64,000 nucleotides of DNA from Entomortierella parvispora E1425 (GCA_020891255.1 BQFW01000012.1:1240001-1304000), one strand, 5' to 3'; shown: positions 3,401-51,739, counted from the stretch's first letter. Numbers and translations: made by a program. Notes: a model not told the origin generated them from the letters alone.

Positions 3401-4117
3401 CATTCCACAGAACAACAGTTGAAAAAAATAGACCAAAGAACTTACACAACTCAATGAATGTCTCTTTATCCTTCTCTCTTTCTTTGCACACGGAGCAGGT
3501 GCACGCTCACTCCCACCTGGGTGTGTATGTGTTTTTGCTCCACAACAACGCACACACAAAAATGACAGGCACAAAGGCACTTCGCTCACCACTGTGCAAC
3601 AAAAGTCAGTTTGCCCAGTTGGAGCAAGACCAAAAAGAAGTGAGAAAAGGCAACGGCGACTTATAGAGGGCAGACAGGTGGCCATGGTTTGAATGAATCA
3701 ACAGCAAGGCACGACAGGGAGCAGTTGCTCATGGGAATATGCGAAATAAGCGAATAAGCGGCTGCCCATCCCACTGTGGAACAGGTGTCTGAATGAATCA
3801 ATTGAGACTGAGTACCCTCGGCCTGCTCTTTGCTCTGGGCCTGGGGCAAGGCTGGGCCGCGCTTTTTTTTTTTTTTTTTTTTGTTCTTCATCCGCCTTCG
3901 CACTCTTCTTTTCTTCTTCACCTTCCGTCCTTCTTGTTGTTGTTGCCTTTTCCTTCTCTCGTCTCTAGCTCCTTCGTAAATTCTCTCCACTCCTCTCCTC
4001 TGCCCTCAGCCTTCACGCTTCACCCCTGCATCCTTCTCCACACCCCTTTTGTTTTTGGACCCAGTTCCGGCAACGGTGGCAATATCGACACAGAACAACT
4101 TGAAGCCTCTACTCAAT

Positions 4118-5029
4118 ATGACAAGCTTTTCTCCCATCGTCTCATCAGCCCTCTCCACAGCGGCCCATCCTTCCTCCTCTGGCCCCTCTACAACCTCGAT
4201 ACAATCAAGAACCATCCTGGAGATGCCGTTCTTGTCCGAGGATTTCTGCTTCCCGTTTGACACATCCTTTACCGGATCGAATCTTCATCATTCTACAACG
4301 ACACAATTATCCACACCTGCAACGTCCGTATCATATACCTCTGAAGCAGAACTCTCGTCATCATCATACTCCCTCTTCAGCACCTCACCTCAAGAGGTCT
4401 TGCTGTCGATCCCAAGCATGTCGACTGCTTGCCCTTATTCCTCAGTTTCGACAACATCGACCTACATCGGAGCGTCTTCATCTTCCCCAAATTCGACAAC
4501 ATCAACACCGTTTGGCTCTCTTGACCTGACCACGTCCTGTGCTCCCAATGCAATGCGTTCGTGTCACTCTCCATCGTCAGCCGGTGCGCTGTTCCTGGAC
4601 GACCAAAGGAACAACTTTGGGATCAATGCACTCTCGAATAACAACAACATCAACAGTAACAACTCTAACGACTGGTCCCTGATGTCCACAACACTGAATA
4701 CCAGCAGCGCTTCTGGCCCACAGCGTGCTGCACCACTTTCTCAACTTGAACTTACTCACTCTCAGGAATACCAATTTGAGCAGGATCCAGACATCTTCTC
4801 TGCCTGGTCCTCACACCCCACGTCTTACCTCACAGCGGCCACACAAGCCCTGACTGGCAATCCTCAGTCCATTCAAACAATCTTGCCCTCCCATGTTGGA
4901 CAACAGCCCCAAGCTCAACAACAGCCTCAGCAGCAATCCCAACAGCAGCAATCCCAACAACAGCAACAGCAGCAATCCCAACAACAGCAACAGCAGCAAT
5001 CCCAACAACAGCAACAGCAGCAATCCCAA

Positions 5030-41464: not shown

Positions 41465-41764
41465 TTACTTGACCAAGTACTTTGATCGGTCCAAAATCTC
41501 CAAACCATAGACTGGTATTGCTGGCTGTGGCGTGGGTACTTCCTCATACGAGGTCATGGGTGTCATCCCGGTCATCGCGTTGGTGCTTGAGGGCGAGCAA
41601 GGCATGGGGGGGATTTGACTGGGAGGCATGCCCTCCTTTTGAAAGCCGAGGCCTTTATTGGCTATGATATGGTCCTGATCCAAGTTGTGAAAGTAGTAGC
41701 GCGAAGGCTTGTGACCATCTGAAGGGATCGGGCGAGGAGGATATTGGAAACTGTGCATGTCCAT
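41465..41764 (-). CDS. small hypothetical protein (99 aa) at the island edge
   Basis: ATG-to-stop ORF, Pro/Met-rich, no recognisable domain. Confidence 0.3.
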   Translation of the reverse strand: MDMHSFQYPPRPIPSDGHKPSRYYFHNLDQDHIIANKGLGFQKEGMPPSQIPPMPCSPSSTNAMTGMTPMTSYEEVPTPQPAIPVYGLEILDRSKYLVK

Positions 41765-42264
41765 CGCGTTTGTGCAGGATACTTTTGAGGTTGGATGTTT
41801 GTTAGATTGCGAAAGATGAAATGAAACGTAAAGTGAAGGGAGGAAAGGTTTGAGGAAAGGTTTGAGGAGGAGTGTTGCTACATGTACGATCTTTTATCCT
41901 GCTGTGTTCTTTGTCTCAGACCCCTCGGTACTCTGCTCTGAGAGGTGTTTGTTCCGTCTTCGATTGCCAATGTCCTTCACACCGCAGTCCATGGAAACCT
42001 GCCCAGTCGCGTTTGCCCTTCAAATTGGAAGGAAATCACGTGATTTACCTGATTCGTGACGTCACAGCATTTTTATCTGTGGATGTTTAACGCAAGCTTC
42101 GCGTCGAGAAAAAAAAGCTTTGCCACGCGTTTTTGTTTTTTTTCCCTTTTGCACTATATCATCCTTCTTTTACCGCCAACTCCCACGCCATTTCCTTTGC
42201 CATCGAGCATCCCACACATTTCATTTTCTCACCTCACTCCCACGCCAAGAGCATCTCCTCCACC

Positions 42265-45244
42265 ATGTCTGATCCAACGTATGGTGAATTCCGGTCGTTC
42301 ACCAAAGCCAAGTACTATGATCCGCAGACTGGAAGGGACGTGAACATGTATTTTGCTTTGGACAAGATCTTCCACGAAAACGCCGACCCCATCGGCCAGC
42401 TGCTCCTCATGGCGCGTGGCAACCGTCCTATAGGCGCAGATGGCAAGAAAATGAATGTCCATCATATCAATCAAGAAGATCACAAGAAAGGTGGAAACTT
42501 TGCGCTGCTGTCCGAAACCATTCACAAGTGCGAACAACTCCATAAGGCGCCCCCCACCGAGAGAGCTATAAAGAAAGTAGGCCGTAATGCAACCCCCGAT
42601 GAAAAGAAAGCGCAAAAGAACATGCAGAGGGAGTTTCTAAGGGGTTTGACACTGTCAGCAAGAATTTCATTCGTACCATGTTTGCGCACATTGTCGAGGG
42701 CCGTCTTCGTCATCCGGCCGTCACCGAGGCTGTCCGCCAGGGCTTTTTGGAGACTCGTGAATACCGCAACGCCGCCAAATGTGCCATACGCTACCAGTCT
42801 GAACCCAAGGCAGGTGGTATCGAGATTATGACCTCGCCCAGTCTGCCGCCTTGTACCGATATTAGGATGTCTGCTGACAAGAAGTTTCTGAGAGCTACCT
42901 TTAACGGAACCAAGTATTGGCTGCCCATTAGTCCGATCGGCGAAGATGCAGTCTTTTATTTGATCTATACGACCATTTTGGACGGGTCGAGACTTTGCAT
43001 CGATATTTCTGCATGTGGCTCCTTTTACATCGTCCATTTGGATGGATATATTGGATCGAGCACGGACATTGCAAAGACCATGGAGCGAGCAGACTTTTTG
43101 CTCGGGGCAATGTCTTTTGGTCGTGATCCTCGCACAGGTGCTTTGTTCGAGCCGAAGAAAGGTCAGCTCCCTGGCTACAAGAATCCCGTTCTCGAAGAGG
43201 CTAGGTTATTGAGGGAGGATGCTCAGTTCGCGGCGGCAAGGTGTCAATACATTGACGTTTGGCCCTACCCAACCTTGGTCTACGATACCCCTTTCTCTTT
43301 TCCAGAGGAGAAGTGGTGGGATGTTTGGCCAAACCTGCAGTTCCCCAAGTCTTACTTTCGCGTGACTTGGCGTTTAGTGATGTTGGATTTGTGCGGGAAA
43401 CAGGCCTTTTACGACATCCCTGAAGACAATGTTGACACAGAAGCCAAGGTGCTCTTGCGTCCATACCAGGCTCTCATGGATTCTGTGCGGCAGCATGGTG
43501 CCGACTGGATTGAGTCTGAACCTGATTTGTGCAAGGTCAACTTGTACGCCAAAGTGTTTCAAGTTCTCTCGCGCGGCCGAACTTCGAGCAACCTGAAGAA
43601 CATCACAATTCCGCCTCTCACAGAAACACCACCGATGGCATGCTCCACCACCGTGGATGAGCGCGCAGATTTTCGGCTGCCCTTGCCGTCTTCTAGTGAA
43701 ATCGACGATGTTGGTCAAGCGCTGGAGTCTGCCTTCACTACAGCCATTGTCGGAAACCCGGATGACCTGACGCGTGCGGCCCAATACAAAAGTCTTGGTA
43801 TGAGCTGCTCCAGGCAAAACAAATTCGACAAGGCCGCTCTTCATTTTCTGGTGTCCGCCAAAACGTATGCTGGCTGTCTTCAGAAAAGCTTGTTGAATTC
43901 CCAGGTAAAAAACCTTCGTTCAGAACACTGATCTTTACAATTTGGTGGCACATTGGTGGCTTACCTACTTCTCTGTCTTTTCGTTGTGGATGGGTTGTTA
44001 GCCCAGTGGAGTGGGATTGCGCCAAGGAGGGAATACGCGACAGCCTTACGTCTGCGTTGGACTCCATCTACCAAGCGCCCACTGACTGGGTCTTCCAACA
44101 GGATGAAACCAAGTATCCACAGTGGTGGAAGCTGCTCCAGACGCAGTTCGGTGACGCGCTTCATGTTGTCACCAGGGTTCTTAGGGAGCCTCGCTTTCAA
44201 CAGATGGAAGGATCTCAAGCCCAGATTGCTGCACCTCTCGTGGCGCACATACTTCTCGTTCATCTTGCGCACGAGATGCTGATCCAGTTTGAAGAGCTGG
44301 AAGACTTGGACGGCATTCGTCGCATCTGCGGCTTTATGGCGCGCCTGTACCATGAGATGAAAGAGCGGGGTATTCCTGTGAATGAGGACGAGAGCGGAAA
44401 CGCAGAGGGCCGTTGGTCAAGTGTCGCGCAGGCGTCGCGAGATCTCCAGGTCCGTCTCTTTGCCAACACCGACAGAGCCGATCCATTCAAGGTGCTGGAC
44501 AAGGTCCTCCAGGATGATGTTGATGAGTCTCTATCTGCCATCGAAAAAAAGCTGCAACAAGATGGCTATACCTCCACTGATCTCTTGACAGATCCCTTGG
44601 GTAGCTCTGCCTTCAACTCTAAACAAATGACTTCTGAAGGCAAGGTTGAGCAGGCCGAACAAGCCATGGACGCTTATTTTATTCAGGGAGATATAGCAGC
44701 GGCCTTGGCTTGCGCGCTCGTCCTGGTCGACGATGAACGAGTTGCAGAAGCCGCATCCACGTTTGCCGAACGTAAAAGATTTTGGACCAAAGCTAGCACA
44801 ATTGCAGAGTACGCCTACGCTCAACAGAACCTTTTGAGCGCCAAGGAGCTAGTCGCAGGTGTCAGAACCACGCTCGACAAAAGACTATACCGAACAACAG
44901 GGATCGAGAGCAAGGCGGCACTGCTGTCTTACCTCACAGAAGCTTCTACCTTGCTTGAGCCTTGCAAACGTTTGTTTCCAAGAGCATCTGAGGCTATGAT
45001 GGGTCTCATCTACAGCACTATGGCGAGAGTCCACAGAGCATGGCTCGACAGCGATACAGCATCCAAATGGACTATGGCCGCAAAGGCGCGAGAAGAGGCA
45101 GCCAAAGCTGAAAGTGATGAGTTGGGTACAAGATACTACGCTCGTGAATGGCTCTTGGACGATAAAAACAAGAGAAAAGAGGACGCCCTCAAATGCACCG
45201 AGGGGTGGCGAGCTATGGTGGCGACTCTGGTGTGCACTGAATAA
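42265..45244 (+). CDS. LHH-type HNH/EndoVII nuclease toxin-like multidomain protein, paralog A
   Basis: N-terminal LMARGNRPIGADGKKMNVHHINQ..LSETIH..QLH. Frame change at about 42600 (short intron or -1 indel). Probable intron 43865-44001. Collinear with paralog B throughout. Confidence 0.75.
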
Positions 45245-45567
45245 TGATAGATGCTGTAGCTCTCAATGAATAACCTTTGGTACAAGTATTGAAATACCAT
45301 GATTTGGCGCGTGTAGTGTTTGTTGTTTTTCTTTCTTTCTATCCTTCCCGTCCAGTTCGCTTTTTCATGCAACTATCTCCGCTTGACATGCATGTCGACA
45401 TCCCCTGTTCCTGCGCTTTGCTTTGCTTTGCCATACATTTTTCTTTGTCAAGCGTATTCTTTCCTTTGCCAGTTCACTCTCACGCCCTTCCTTTCCCACT
45501 TCACCATCCCAACTCCCCTTTCAACATTCATCCATTCATCCCCTCGCCAAGACCATAAGCGCCAGCT

Positions 45568-48372
45568 ATGTCTGATACATCTGATCAAACACACGTTGAA
45601 GACGGATACCAAGCCAAGAACATTAATCTCAGGAGTGGAAGAGAATCGAGCATGTCCTTCCATTCGGATAAGATCTCCCACGACAACACTGACCTCATCG
45701 GCAAGCTGTTCCTCATGGCACGTGGCGTATGTCCCATCGATTCGGATAACAAGATGTCGAAGGGCAATGGTTTCATTCGCACCATGATTGCCAATATCAC
45801 TGACAGTGGCCCTCATCCGATCGTCGCCGAAGCTGTCAGTCAAGATTTCTTGGGCACCCGTGAGTATCCCGACATTGCCGAATGTGCCGTGCGCTATCAC
45901 TCTGTTCCAAAGCCAGGCGGCATCGAGATCATGACCTTGTCCAGCCTTCCCGAGTGCGGCGAAATCAAACTGGAGGATGACAAGAAATCTCTGTCGGCTG
46001 TCTTCAACAGGACCGAATACTGGTTACCCATGAACGATGTTTCACAGGAGGAGCTCTACTGTTTGGTTCATTCTGCCAGCTTGAGGGTGCCTAGGCTGTC
46101 CATCGATATCTCCACCTATGGATCCTTCTATGCCGTCAATATGGACGGAGGTGTTGGACAGGGAACGATTGTGGCCAAAACTATGGAGCGTGCGTTCTTT
46201 CAACTCTGTGCAATGGCTTTTGGTCGTGATGCCCATTCTGGTGCTTTGTTCGAGCCCAAAAGAGGTCAACTTGCTGACTACAAGAATCCTGTCCTCGAGG
46301 AAGCCAAGCTTTTGAAAGAGGATGCTCAGTACGCAGCGGCAAGGTGCCAGTATATTTCGGCGCGTCCTTACCCGACATTGATCTATAACACACCTTTCTC
46401 CTTACCGGCGCCAGGATGGTTGGATATTTGGCCAAAGTTGGAGTTTCCAAAGTCCTACGTTCGTGTGACCTGGCGTCTTGTGCTGGTGGATTTGTTTGGT
46501 CGATCGGCCTTCTATGATGTTCCTGTAACGAATGTTGAGGCAGAGGCCGAGATCCTCCTGCGCCCCTACAAGGCCCTGATGGAATCCGTGCGGAAGCATG
46601 GTGCCGAGTGGATAGACTCGGAGCCTGATCTGTGCAAGGTGAACATGTACGCCAAAATTTTCCATCTGCTCTCTCGGGCGCGCTCATCCAGTGGATTCCG
46701 AAATTTTGACATTCCGTTCAATATTGCGGAATCGCCCAAGTCTTTTTCTGCCACTGTGGTCGAGCGCGCGGATTTCTTCTCGCCGAGTCCTTTGGAAATC
46801 GACAGTCTTGGACAAGAGTTGGAGTCTGCCCTCACTTTGGCTGTTGTGAATAACCCCGATGACCTGACACGTGCGGCTCAATACAGACGATTGGGCATGA
46901 GCTGCCTCAGATTGAACAAGCTTGACAAGGCCACGCTGCATTTTCTGCAGGCCGCGAAAATGTGTGCCGCTTGCCTTCAGCACCGTTTGTCGGATCCCAA
47001 GGTAATCAATCTTACCTCAATGAACTTTATGGTTTTGTAATAATGTGATTTTGTTGCTTGGATGGTTGCTGATATGAACTGCCATTAGTCGAGTCGTGCG
47101 ATAGAGGCGGAGTACGCCAAGGAAGGAATACGCGACAATTTCGTTTCTGTTCTGGAGACCATTTACCAAATGCCCACAGACTGGGTCTTTCAAAGAGACG
47201 TGTCCAAGCGACCGCCATGGTGGAAAGCCCTCCAGGATCAGTTTGGTGACGCGCTTTGCATTATAGCCACAGTTCTTGAAGACCACTTCTTCTTGTCGAT
47301 GGGGGAACGTCTGGCTCAGAGTGCGGCACCTCTTGTGGTGCACGTGCTGCTTGTTCAGCTGGCACATGAGATGTTGGCCGAGTTTGAAGAACTGCAAGAC
47401 TTGGATGGCATTCGTTGGATCTGCGAGTTCATGGCGCAGCTGTATGGTGGCATGGAGAAGCGGGGCATCGCTGTGAGTACTCGTTACAGCGAAAGCTCAG
47501 AGTATCGTTGGCCAAGTATCGAACTGGCGTCGTTGGCGCTCAAGAGGCGTCTCTTTGACGACACTCATCCAACCGACCCATTCACAGTGTTGGAGAGGGT
47601 CCTACAAGGCGACACTGCTGGTTCATTCTCCTTCAACAAGGAAATTCAGCAGCAGGGTAAATCGTCTGACACCACCCGCTCTCCAGCACTTGATGCCGTA
47701 TGTGACACCCTTTCCAGTTCCCAGCATATCTCTCCAGATGGCAAAGTCATGCAGGCTGAACGGACAATGGATTTTTACTTTATTCAAGGGGACATAGCAG
47801 CCTCCCTGGCCTGTGCCCTCGTCCTGGCTAATGACGAAGAGTATGCCAAGGTATCCACATTTTCCGATCGCGCAAGGTTCTGGACCAAAGCCAGAGTAGT
47901 TGCTGAATACGCCTCTGCTCAACAGAGTCTTATGGGTGCCAAACAGCTCATCCAAGGTGTCCGGTCCACTCTCGACGAAAATAATTACCAGACGTCCTTG
48001 ATCGGGCACAAGGCTGCACTACTTTACTATCTCACGAAAGCCCATGATTTGCTTGATCATAGCCGACGTCCGTTCCCAAGGGCGCCCGAGATCTTGCGGG
48101 GTCTTGTCTACAGCACCATGGCAAGTGTGCACGAAGCCTGGTTCGATAGCAAGACTGCATCTAGGTGGACAGTGGCCGCAGGGTCACGAGGTGAAGTGGC
48201 TGGATCTTGGAGTGATGATCTTGGAGCCAGGATGTACGCTCAAGAATGGCTCTTGGACGCCAAGAGTCAGAAAAAGGAAAGTGCCCTGAAATGCACCAAA
48301 GAGTGGCAGGACATGGTCAAGGCCATGACTGAACTCTCAAGAGTTCCACTGAACAAAGATTCTGAGCCCTAG
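45568..48372 (+). CDS. paralog B of the LHH-fused protein, lacking the nuclease catalytic core
   Basis: Exons 45568-47001 and 47089-48372 are in frame (phase-0 intron). Strong similarity to A, e.g. GGIEIMT, AKTMERA, ALFEPKxGQLxxYKNPVLEEA, WPxLxFPKSYxRVTWRLV, EPDLCKVNxYAK, YFIQGDIAAxLACALVL. Confidence 0.85.
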
Positions 48373-48659: not shown

Positions 48660-49271
48660 ATGTTCAACAGCCCTCCCAACATGTTAACGCCCGCAGAATG
48701 CGCCAGGAAGTGGTCTTCGAGCAACGATCTCCCGTTTACGTGCTTCGTGTTACCATGGCTTGATTCTCTTGATGTCCTTGTCGACTATAGTTCTGTGGAG
48801 GACAAAAATACTCGTATGGTGCACAAAGAGTGGTTCTGGTTCTTTGGATATTCAAACGGCAGCTCAGCGACGCACTGGGGCTGTGATATGTTTGTCAACA
48901 TCAACGAAGCCTCTTCTCACAAAGGAACTGTAATTGTGCGAGAGGACCAAAGCAAGTTTTTGGTGTGGAACTTTCGAACATTCTTCATCTTTCCAAGTCT
49001 GAAGCGCCAGTTGAGGTTTGCAACGAGTGCAGCGTTCCCAAAATATCAGAAAGAGAACAACTACTATGTCGCCGATGATGTTGTCTATGAGCAAAGGGGC
49101 AAATCTGAAGACCACCTTCAGGACGAAAACCTACGTGACTTTATTACGAAATGTGCCGAAAAAAGTGGCTACATGTTTCATACTTTCTGTGTCCCGGCTA
49201 CGGGAGAGCTCGTGTCTGAACTTGTGGACACCCTTGTGGAATCGGAGCCTTTCAAATATAGGCGGATTTGA
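48660..49271 (+). CDS. orphan hypothetical protein (203 aa)
   Basis: Intronless ATG ORF with globular composition, directly downstream of paralog B. Confidence 0.6.
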   Translation: MFNSPPNMLTPAECARKWSSSNDLPFTCFVLPWLDSLDVLVDYSSVEDKNTRMVHKEWFWFFGYSNGSSATHWGCDMFVNINEASSHKGTVIVREDQSKFLVWNFRTFFIFPSLKRQLRFATSAAFPKYQKENNYYVADDVVYEQRGKSEDHLQDENLRDFITKCAEKSGYMFHTFCVPATGELVSELVDTLVESEPFKYRRI

Positions 49272-49752: not shown

Positions 49753-51739
49753 ATGAATCCACTGAAGATCAAGGACATCTTTCTGCAGTCCACTGACTTT
49801 CGCCCCACCGAGACGGTCGAGCCCTACCCTATCCCGAGAGCACACGATTCACCGAGTCTTTTTACCGCCACTTTTACCTTTGACGAATTCCGTGCATTCT
49901 GGGCAACGGAGCGCATTGCTTTTCAATGGGAGTTTCGTTCCGAGGGCGGCCGACGGGATTTTGCACAGCAGGTCGGAAACACACTCTTGCCGACGTATGT
50001 GCCCCGGGAAGGCCGAGGAAAACCACGCCAGTTTGACTGGTCCTTTCGGTTTCGGTGCAGGAGACATCGCCCACCTAAGGACCTTGCTATCCGAAGAGAA
50101 TCTGTAGGGACAGGTTGTCCAGTGTATATCAGGATGCGCAAGCCTATTCGTCAGGACACGGTGCAGATCGAATACCTTTGGCGACATAACCATGATGTGT
50201 CTGCCAAAGCTAGAGCCATGCTTCCCGTCGGGAAAAACGAGCTAAATTGGACAAAGTCCAAGATTGCTGAAGGTCTGGATTGGATGGGGATCAAGACGCA
50301 GCTGCAGCCTTCAGAGGATGTCCTTCGACAACTGGAACTTGAACAAGTCGAACCCCCCCCCTCGACCAACATCTCGTATCAGCATTTCCGAAAAGCCATC
50401 TATCGTCAGGAGACGAGCGAATGTCGAAAAGCAGAAGAGATGGCCAAGAGCGTGAGGCTCTGGATGGAACAAATTGAACAGGAGGGTGGCAAGACCTTGT
50501 TCATGGAACAGATTGAGGACAGGCCAGACAGTTTTATGATTGCATGGTCCACATCCTTTCAACTCCAGGTATTGTTTTGTTCCCCCTCTTCCCCTCAGTG
50601 GACATTTTACCCAATCCATTTTGTTGGAAAAAAAAATCGATTCGCAGTCTTTGCAGATATTAACGAGCTTTTTTTCCCCTCTCATCGTTGCCATAGATCC
50701 TACTCGCCAACCAATCTATATTCTACGTCGACACTACAGACAAGGCATGCAAATCTTTAAAGTCGACAGAGGCGAATGGCAAAAATGTCGAGGCAGGATT
50801 GTTGTTCACATTACTTGTCAAAGATCAGGCTACGCACAAAGGGATACCCGTTGCTTATATGATTGGCAACCTGGAGTCACGGTACGTTCAAGGAGTTCTT
50901 TGGTCGAGTCCACAAAGGAATGGAGGGAAAAAAAAAATGCTGATGCGACGTGACTTTGTTTCCTTCCTCAAAATCTAGCGATATTTTGGAACGGTGGTTG
51001 ATTTGGCTTCAAGATGAATGCAGGTGGAAGACATCCAACCTCATGGTGGATTGCTCGATCCCGGACTCGCAAATCCCCTATTCAACCATTCCCAACATAT
51101 CAAAGTACTATTGCGCATTTCATATTGGATGTGCATGGGACCGAAAGATGAAACAGCTGCACCGAGTACGTTGATGACTATCGTGAATATCCCAAGAACT
51201 TTTGATTTTACGCTGGCAAGAAGACGAAGCTAACTCTGCTTATTGTAGGTACCTGACTGGGAAATGATGCGTCCTCCCTTGCAGCAAATGCGATCAGCGT
51301 CGTCTGCCGAGAGATTGGTAGCAGGATGGAGTACCTTCAAGGAAAGGTTTCCTGGTGCCACCGGGTTGATTCAGTATCTTGAAACGTGGATGGTACCGAG
51401 CATGGTGGCAAGATGGGCGGTCTATATGCGCGAGGTGAGTTTTTCTTTTTCTCTTTTGCTCTATTTTTCCTTTTTTTTTATTTTTATTTTTATGTTTTCT
51501 GGAAAGAGGGACTGACATGGACACACCACAATATTATTCATCGTTTCTAGTATCGAAGCAATCAGCAGATCGACGCTTGCAACCTAGTGGAGGAATGGCA
51601 CGTAGCACTGAAAAGGCACCATGTCGGGATCGGACGCGATGCACGACCGGACCGTCTGATTTTCTTTTTGCACGGCGAAGTTGAAGCAGAGTTCTCAGAG
51701 ATGTATCGCAAGGCCCGGGATGGATTGGAGTTGGTGTGA
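49753..51739 (+). mobile_element. Mutator-like (MULE) DDE transposase gene with four introns; no TIRs recognised
   Basis: N-terminal C..H..GCP..EY..HNH zinc-finger-like module. After splicing: YVDTT (D1), LMVDCS (D2), CAFHIGCAW, YLETW, NLVEEWHVALK (E), RPDRLIFFL. Confidence 0.85.

Follow-up and report, generated by a model that had tools for sequence, protein, structure and literature searches.

An LHH-family domain fused to a new-fold body in Mortierellomycota: recurrent damage to the nuclease part, and no uninterrupted fusion in either copy of Entomortierella parvispora E1425

In bacterial polymorphic toxin systems, Tox-LHH serves as a toxin module, and it has been listed for bacteria only (PMC3482391); a 2017 census counted 522 bacterial LHH sequences versus a single eukaryotic one (PMC5714182). 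Here, we describe two fungal genes, paralogs A and B, that lie head-to-tail on the + strand at 42265-48372 of a 64,000-nucleotide (nt) stretch of contig 12 of Entomortierella parvispora E1425 (BQFW01000012.1:1240001-1304000, hereafter the window). Both belong to a protein family in which an LHH domain is joined to a large body, and neither E1425 copy encodes an uninterrupted LHH-body fusion, given a frame change in paralog A and a deleted core in paralog B. With a probability of about 0.5, we read the family as conflict-type nuclease effectors joined to a regulatory body and recurrently disarmed.

The family resembles Tox-LHH/PF14411 in its HH dyad with two downstream His, in the G.xP.G.DG motif that precedes them, and in a profile score above the cut-off. 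In contrast to that module, it is eukaryotic and contains introns, carries the LHH domain at the N-terminus instead of the C-terminus, reads VHH in place of LHH, lacks secretion/trafficking, RHS or filamentous domains, and is fused to a body of 800 amino acids (aa) that has no bacterial relatives. The C-terminal toxin on a secreted protein that is typical of a bacterial polymorphic toxin system is thus not found here, the N-terminus of the family being hydrophilic. SPOK of Podospora is alike in being a cytoplasmic fungal protein whose nuclease is attached to a larger body, in having nuclease-dead variants, and in its patchy distribution and variable genomic places (PMC6660238), but differs in having a PD-(D/E)XK nuclease and a kinase; it shares no sequence or domain homology with the family, which has no known drive phenotype. 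Fungal NLRs and bacterial Avs-type STAND sensors follow the same order of effector, central domain and C-terminal helical/TPR-like region, whereas their NACHT/NB-ARC P-loop is absent from the family (no Walker A, no fold match). Likeness to CLU/CLUH amounts to an automatic UniRef label ('Clu domain-containing protein') on the Actinomortierella ambigua protein P0026; this identity was rejected, as hhalign of both body alignments against the genome's own CLU domain gave a probability of 0.2%, and no Pfam CLU (PF13236) match was found in the family. In full-text literature searches, no connection of Mortierella or Mucoromycota to LHH or to polymorphic toxins came up. The LHH domain is of a known kind; new are the fusion of this domain, at the N-terminus, to a new-fold body, its occurrence in a fungal phylum and the way in which it has decayed. 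The two genes are laid out along the window as follows.

42265..42645, + strand: first open reading frame (ORF) of paralog A up to the frame change, 127 codons for a 47-aa N-terminal leader and the LHH domain.
42577..42641, + strand: candidate 65-nt GT..AG piece of paralog A, frame-restoring if spliced, probably no intron.
42640..42647, + strand: frame-change site of paralog A, letters AGGGGTTT.
42646..42831, + strand: out-of-frame tail of the first ORF of paralog A, ending at the stop codon of that ORF.
42648..43904, + strand: central body of paralog A (frame 0), an alpha/beta domain and then the first helices of the helical region.
43905..44011, + strand: inferred intron of paralog A (GTAAAA..GGAG, phase 0), placed by homology.
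44012..45244, + strand: C-terminal helical region of paralog A, 410 codons and stop.
45568..47001, + strand: exon 1 of paralog B, 478 codons for the N-leader, the N-terminal LHH remnant LFLMARGVCPIDSDNK and then directly the body.
47002..47088, + strand: intron of paralog B, 87 nt, GT..AG, confirmed by RNA.
47089..48372, + strand: exon 2 of paralog B, C-terminal helical region, 427 codons and stop.

The N-terminal part of paralog A carries the link to bacterial toxins. Its opening peptide and four His codons at 42460, 42463, 42523 and 42541, all of which had been pointed out in a sequence-only reading of this DNA, are present and correspond to H66, H67, H87 and H93. Compared with Pfam LHH (PF14411), the first ORF matched at E = 8e-8 and 32.7 bits over residues 48-93 (nt 42406-42543), and a shorter cut of it reached 34.3 bits; since the curated gathering cut-off is 23.3 bits, the LHH membership proposed in that reading is borne out. 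A six-frame scan of the whole genome (38.9 Mb) returned paralog A as its single LHH match (E = 1.3e-6, 33.7 bits). The HH dyad reads V-H66-H67, and the downstream His are H87 and L92-H93. All four His are invariant, together with G52, P55, L92 and R107, in an alignment (A4) of 17 LHH sequences of fungal, dinoflagellate and bacterial origin. Paralog A contains E84, a position that varies across the fungal clade, as well as the C-terminal R..F motif (R107, F110), and its N-terminus, MSDPTYGEF, matches that of orthologs with the same start, such as MSDPTYDEF in P0002. Profile match and residue conservation mark the N-terminal domain of paralog A as a genuine member of the LHH family, whose fold would be of the His-Me-finger (HNH/EndoVII) type.

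Paralog B, by comparison, lacks the ~70 codons that carry all four His; it reads LFLMARGVCPIDSDNK followed directly by MSKGNGFIRTM across the deletion, whose junction lies at ~45751-45759, and it has no Pfam LHH match. Paralogs A and B are the sole two family copies in the genome, and their central bodies are 62% identical. The head-to-tail duplication noted earlier is thus real, but the nuclease-body fusion ascribed to both copies does not extend to paralog B. This copy is transcribed: in run X2 (same sample, RNA-like), a 2.8-kb contig of depth 24.7 covers 45506-46999 without a gap, then leaves out 87 nt with GT..AG ends and resumes in exon 2, confirming the intron at 47002-47088. Run X3, from a different sample of this organism, gave no matching contig. 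Paralog A is represented by four short RNA-derived contigs (42654-42906, 42930-43283, 44258-44619 and 44808-45256) at a depth of 3-7, versus 24.7 for paralog B. Its intron at 43905-44011 was placed by homology with the RNA-confirmed exon end of paralog B (..HRLSDPK) and with Linnemannia elongata P0003; the public annotation has this intron at 43865-44001, and no RNA contig spans the predicted one.

The LHH ORF of paralog A follows the frame of 42265, whereas its body follows that of 42642. The former (frame 1) runs ...KNMQREFLRG to 42645, while frame 0 continues FDTVSKNFIRTMF and, from 42645, reads FDTVSKNFIRTMFAHIVEG. Orthologs cross the homologous stretch in a single frame (QEEFRRGFRTVSGGFIRTMF; QEEFRRGFRTVS), and in a Linnemannia isolate (L007, P0002) a single genomic ORF runs without interruption through ...KTQEEFRRGFRTVSGGFIRTMFAHIVEG, which places the frame change of paralog A within AGGGGTTT (42640-42647). 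The E1425 genome is a Nanopore assembly polished by Pilon with HiSeq reads and given an RNA-seq-hinted annotation (PMC8759367). An independently built contig of the strain's DNA run (depth 76) shows 0 differences over 42200-47200, and the letters at the frame change are therefore no assembly slip. We consider it likely that paralog A is frame-broken after its LHH domain. In its present form, the first ORF (42265-42831) specifies 188 aa, comprising an LHH domain with all four His and a 62-aa out-of-frame tail, and this exact product is absent from the public protein collection; with the frame broken, the body would be producible only from an internal start. The public model EMPS_08789 (P0001, GJJ76430.1, hypothetical protein) is 100% identical to the part of paralog A that starts at Met 42678; by beginning there, it leaves out the LHH-encoding 5' part.

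Paralog A would be intact if the 65-nt piece at 42577-42641 (GTAGGC..CTAAG) were spliced as an intron and a full LHH-body protein were made in E1425. This explanation has in its favor the GT..AG ends and frame-restoring length of the piece, the strong conservation of the LHH codons (ratio of nonsynonymous to synonymous substitution rates, dN/dS, of 0.12 versus L007), and a product that reads AIKKGFDTVS, like the family motif TIDRKAFRRAS, and scores 222.9 bits with the family hidden Markov model (HMM) versus 218.5 bits for a read-through with X at the break, a comparison that does not separate the two models. However, the piece is purine-rich and contains 14% T, versus 36-41% in the two other introns, has no pyrimidine tract, and offers as its sole branch-like element a CTAA at the acceptor. 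It also encodes VGRNAT..QREFLR, which is homologous to ortholog coding sequence: QREFLRG aligns with QEEFRRG of L. elongata and VGRNAT with SGGNST of the Benniella group. Moreover, the RNA-hinted public annotation starts at 42678 without an LHH exon, and no RNA contig lies over 42200-42653. On these grounds, an intact paralog A is unlikely, and the 65-nt piece is probably ancestrally coding and not an intron. Of the intron-containing fusion gene described at the outset, one intron per gene is thus supported, whereas a join of LHH and body by an intron is not, as the frames differ and the piece is atypical. To other routes, such as ribosomal slippage at a G_GGU_UUG heptamer, we assign a very small chance. 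This heptamer, of the X_XXY_YYZ slippery type, coincides with the frame change at 42642-42648; a programmed -1 frameshift there was set aside as a far-fetched option, no downstream RNA structure being predicted (z = 0.36). Single-base losses arise at runs of identical letters anyway.

Relatives of the pair were found only in Mortierellomycota, namely, in Entomortierella, L. elongata, Linnemannia gamsii, Linnemannia exigua, Dissophora globulifera, Actinomortierella wolfii, A. ambigua, Benniella, Modicella reniformis, Podila horticola, Mortierella hygrophila, several Mortierella spp. and three further isolates; metagenome members were limited to two soil-metagenome contigs. Family proteins are ~950-1010 aa long (959-1016 aa for the annotated intact fusions) and consist of a short N-leader, the LHH domain, an alpha/beta domain of ~330 aa and a helical C-terminal region of ~450 aa. 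The four His are in frame with the body in 11 of the 17 assessable loci, and the nuclease is damaged in the other six. Intact annotated fusions are P0011, P0029, P0012, P0018 and P0019, P0030 has an intact LHH domain in a truncated model, and the genomic contigs L007, L008 and L009 each encode an N-terminal LHH domain and the body in one ORF. The damage is of different kinds and at different positions in the six loci. Besides paralogs A and B, L. elongata AG-77 misses one base inside the LHH domain relative to L007, Modicella has VHH changed to RHL and QLH to QLR plus a stop codon and a repeat insertion, A. ambigua has lost the fourth His in frame, and L. exigua has LH changed to LL. The public models of both E. 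parvispora A and L. elongata AG-77 leave out the LHH-encoding 5' part (42265-42677 and L006 7642-8046, respectively), which in both genomes is in another frame than the body; the AG-77 model (K457DRAFT_143219) starts at the equivalent Met. Given its confinement to Mortierellomycota, its non-syntenic places and its repeated nuclease loss, the family is not the fungus-wide conserved housekeeping one that had been named as an alternative. In Modicella reniformis (L010, ~4110-4330), the decayed LHH remnant is followed by a degenerate insertion of PDI(Q/L/K)-type peptide repeats that is annotated as an intron.

The body of the family is conserved and matched no described fold in our comparisons. 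AlphaFold2 (AF2) modeled the central 421 aa of paralog A as a mixed alpha/beta domain with helices after it, at a mean predicted local distance difference test score (pLDDT) of 77, and of ~90 over residues 60-380. Fold comparisons of this central part gave a best E of 0.04 with Foldseek against PDB, TM <= 0.24 in the ESM Atlas and a best Z of 4.4 in an exhaustive VIA-align search; MHC-platform-like rows from the latter (Z 3.6-3.8) were rejected as noise level, and no SUKH-like fold match was obtained. The body likewise has no Pfam, NCBIfam or PADLOC match, no conserved Walker A, and no relative among 185,579 species genomes of bacteria and archaea. Its most conserved stretch reads RADFLLGA..FGRD..G.LFEPK.GQL.GYKNP.LE..RLL..D..YAAARCQY. 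The C-terminal 410 aa of paralog A gave sub-threshold TPR-type signals only, and language-model look-alikes were limited to TPR leads below 0.9 for the C-terminus, with none for the central domain. Thus, of the central alpha/beta region and TPR-like helical C-terminus that had been suggested, the former is modeled with confidence and the latter is backed by signals below threshold. Neither a signal peptide nor a secretion-related Pfam domain was detected in the family proteins, which are probably cytoplasmic because their N-termini are hydrophilic.

Every LHH and body segment compared gave a dN/dS of 0.12-0.34, including values of 0.20 and 0.22 for the body parts of paralog A versus paralog B; the short leader ahead of the core gave the sole higher value between the two copies (0.62). 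Judging from these codon ratios, the bodies of both copies are under purifying selection. Paralogs A and B are sisters in the gene tree with 100/100 support, the branch of paralog B is 2.4x longer, and dS between them is ~1.4, from which it follows that the duplication is old and the frame change of paralog A comparatively recent. The gene tree does not match the genera: both Linnemannia (elongata versus gamsii and exigua) and Actinomortierella (ambigua versus wolfii) are split between two well-supported clades, a pattern that suggests either ancient paralogs with differential loss or transfer within Mortierellaceae. No synteny of the flanks was observed between species: seven orthologous loci compared with the window by tblastx shared only short noise matches with it outside the genes, and such differing flanks fit an accessory gene.

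A search by phmmer with the N-terminal 127 aa of paralog A against 1.84 billion representatives matched 9 proteins: five family members, one transcript of the dinoflagellate Amphidinium carterae and three small LHH proteins of uncertain/bacterial origin. One of the latter three belongs to a toxin/immunity-like gene pair of the usual bacterial kind. The dinoflagellate transcript was the best non-fungal match (E 1e-8), the bacterial ones being at E 2e-4 to 6e-4, and the nearest bacterial-type sequences are ~42-44% identical over ~60-90 residues. The A. carterae protein (P0013, EukProt EP00971, 221 aa) has a full LHH domain (70.7 bits) and continues with ..YR..RFDSFPKPGGV.., a stretch similar to the beginning of the fungal body (hhalign E 5e-4, probability 32%). 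Either a remote eukaryotic kinship with the fusion or contamination could account for it. A bacterial metagenome contig (L014, 8001-9010) encodes a 168-aa LHH protein (97.5 bits) whose stop codon is overlapped by a 167-aa gene, likely as a toxin/immunity pair, near transposase and TIR-TPR genes. It had been proposed that the nuclease was possibly acquired from a bacterium or endosymbiont. A recent horizontal acquisition, for instance from a Mycoavidus endosymbiont, would agree with the overwhelmingly bacterial distribution of LHH (PMC3482391; PMC5714182) and with the Burkholderiaceae-related endobacterium carried by the host strain (PMC8759367). However, beyond the weakness of the nearest bacterial-type matches, the LHH piece has no relative in the 185,579 species genomes, and the G+C content and introns are host-like. 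Moreover, the domain is common to deep Mortierellomycota lineages (Benniella, Modicella), so that any bacterial transfer must be ancient. A recent event thus finds no support and is barely credible, and Mycoavidus is not plausible as a recent donor.

Two ORFs follow paralog B on the + strand, a 203-aa one directly downstream (48660-49271) and a 335-aa one at 49753-50760, the latter without a Pfam match at E <= 1. The 203-aa ORF has no Pfam match, genome paralog, language-model look-alike or public protein entry, and a SUKH-like reading of it (48660-49268) was rejected on the first three of these counts. Across the neighboring ORFs (48660-49268, 49753-50757 and 41465-41761), no SUKH or other Pfam match and no adjacent immunity gene were found.

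The preferred reading, a disarmed family of conflict-type effectors, would work as follows. In intact members, the LHH domain would act as a metal-dependent effector that cuts nucleic acids, and the conserved body would restrain, aim and/or trigger it. This would make the family a conflict system of the self/non-self, anti-invader or toxin-antidote type, and not a housekeeping enzyme. Such a role is favored over housekeeping because of the lineage restriction, the variable genomic place, the mismatch between gene tree and genera, and the repeated loss of the nuclease with the body kept. E1425 would be disarmed, with a nuclease-free function of the body, in regulation, sensing or protection, under selection, and paralog B, the expressed copy, would have to work without a nuclease. 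Immune sensing, self/non-self recognition and a Spok-like element are candidate readings for the intact members.

A number of observations weigh against this interpretation. The PF14411 match spans profile positions 5-50 of 76 only, and the conserved N and W of the LHH family, which are listed with E as further conserved residues by Zhang 2012 (PMC3482391), were not evident in the fungal clade on comparison of the alignments. The AF2 model of the LHH domain, built from the 17-sequence alignment, reached a pLDDT of 55 and does not confirm the fold; at that low confidence, it places strands at 64-68 and 78-82, with a short helix spanning 90-93, in a beta-beta-alpha-metal-like pattern. Because of this pLDDT, a Foldseek search with the model carries no meaning, and PDB sequence searches found no relatives of the domain. 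A predicted complex of the LHH domain and body of paralog A scored 0.00 in a run without controls, which is evidence neither way. No RNA-derived contig lies over the LHH ORF of paralog A, which may be silent; the RNA contigs of this gene, all downstream of 42654, fit a transcribed as well as a silent LHH ORF. The family HMM does not separate the spliced from the broken model of paralog A, and some of the damaged loci outside E1425 could be assembly, sequencing or annotation errors. Finally, PADLOC, NCBIfam and Pfam searches of the locus gave no defence-system, NLR or immunity-protein signature.

Other explanations share parts of this evidence. The most far-reaching holds that the locus represents a previously unrecognised eukaryotic conflict system, in which a bacterial-type LHH toxin is joined to a new-fold body serving as antidote or trigger; the E1425 pair would be a nuclease-bearing copy beside an antidote-only copy, and the whole a single-protein toxin-antidote (Spok-like) element or a STAND-less sensor in endobacteria-hosting early-diverging fungi. 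We regard this as doubtful. Similarly doubtful is a nuclease-armed innate-immune sensor akin to NLRs or Avs, whose C-terminus would sense an invader (endobacterium, virus or foreign nucleus), whose central domain would be the switch and whose LHH domain would destroy nucleic acids. The order of effector, central domain and C-terminal helical repeat-like region, the endobacteria harbored by the host fungi (PMC8759367) and the accessory-type evolution are all consistent with such a sensor, but the central domain has neither a conserved Walker A nor a NACHT/NB-ARC Pfam match or P-loop fold match, PADLOC found nothing, and a copy number of 1-2 is unlike the expanded NLR repertoires of fungi.

A selfish element of the Spok kind, in which one protein combines a killing nuclease with a protecting body, paralog B is antidote-only and decay follows fixation, is quite improbable on present evidence. 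SPOK kills through its nuclease and protects through another domain, and alleles with a dead nuclease stay resistant (PMC6660238); the recurring loss of the nuclease with retention of the body, the non-syntenic context and patchy distribution, and the placement of a nuclease-less copy next to a nuclease-bearing one all recall this arrangement. Conversely, a Pfam scan revealed no SPOK homology, PD-(D/E)XK nuclease or kinase, and most intact orthologs are present as single copies that evolve under ordinary purifying selection. The domain could instead be a domesticated, non-toxic nuclease for DNA repair or RNA processing, with E1425 copies that are decaying or subfunctionalised. HNH clades of toxin origin have been recruited to eukaryotic DNA repair (PMC3482391), and the whole protein is under purifying selection, LHH included where intact. 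However, such a nuclease has a slim chance, considering that 6 of 17 loci have lost it but keep a conserved body, and that the family occupies different genomic places within one fungal phylum. Across these alternatives, we favor a recurrently disarmed family of conflict-type effectors.

A fungal clade with an N-terminal LHH domain stands in contrast to catalogues that list LHH as a bacterial toxin module with hardly any eukaryotic members (PMC3482391; PMC5714182). In E1425, both copies are uncoupled from the nuclease. Across the family, repeated independent disarming with the body kept is what one would expect where a dangerous effector has a useful partner, and it makes the family a tractable entry to toxin- or immune-like systems in Mucoromycota-grade fungi.

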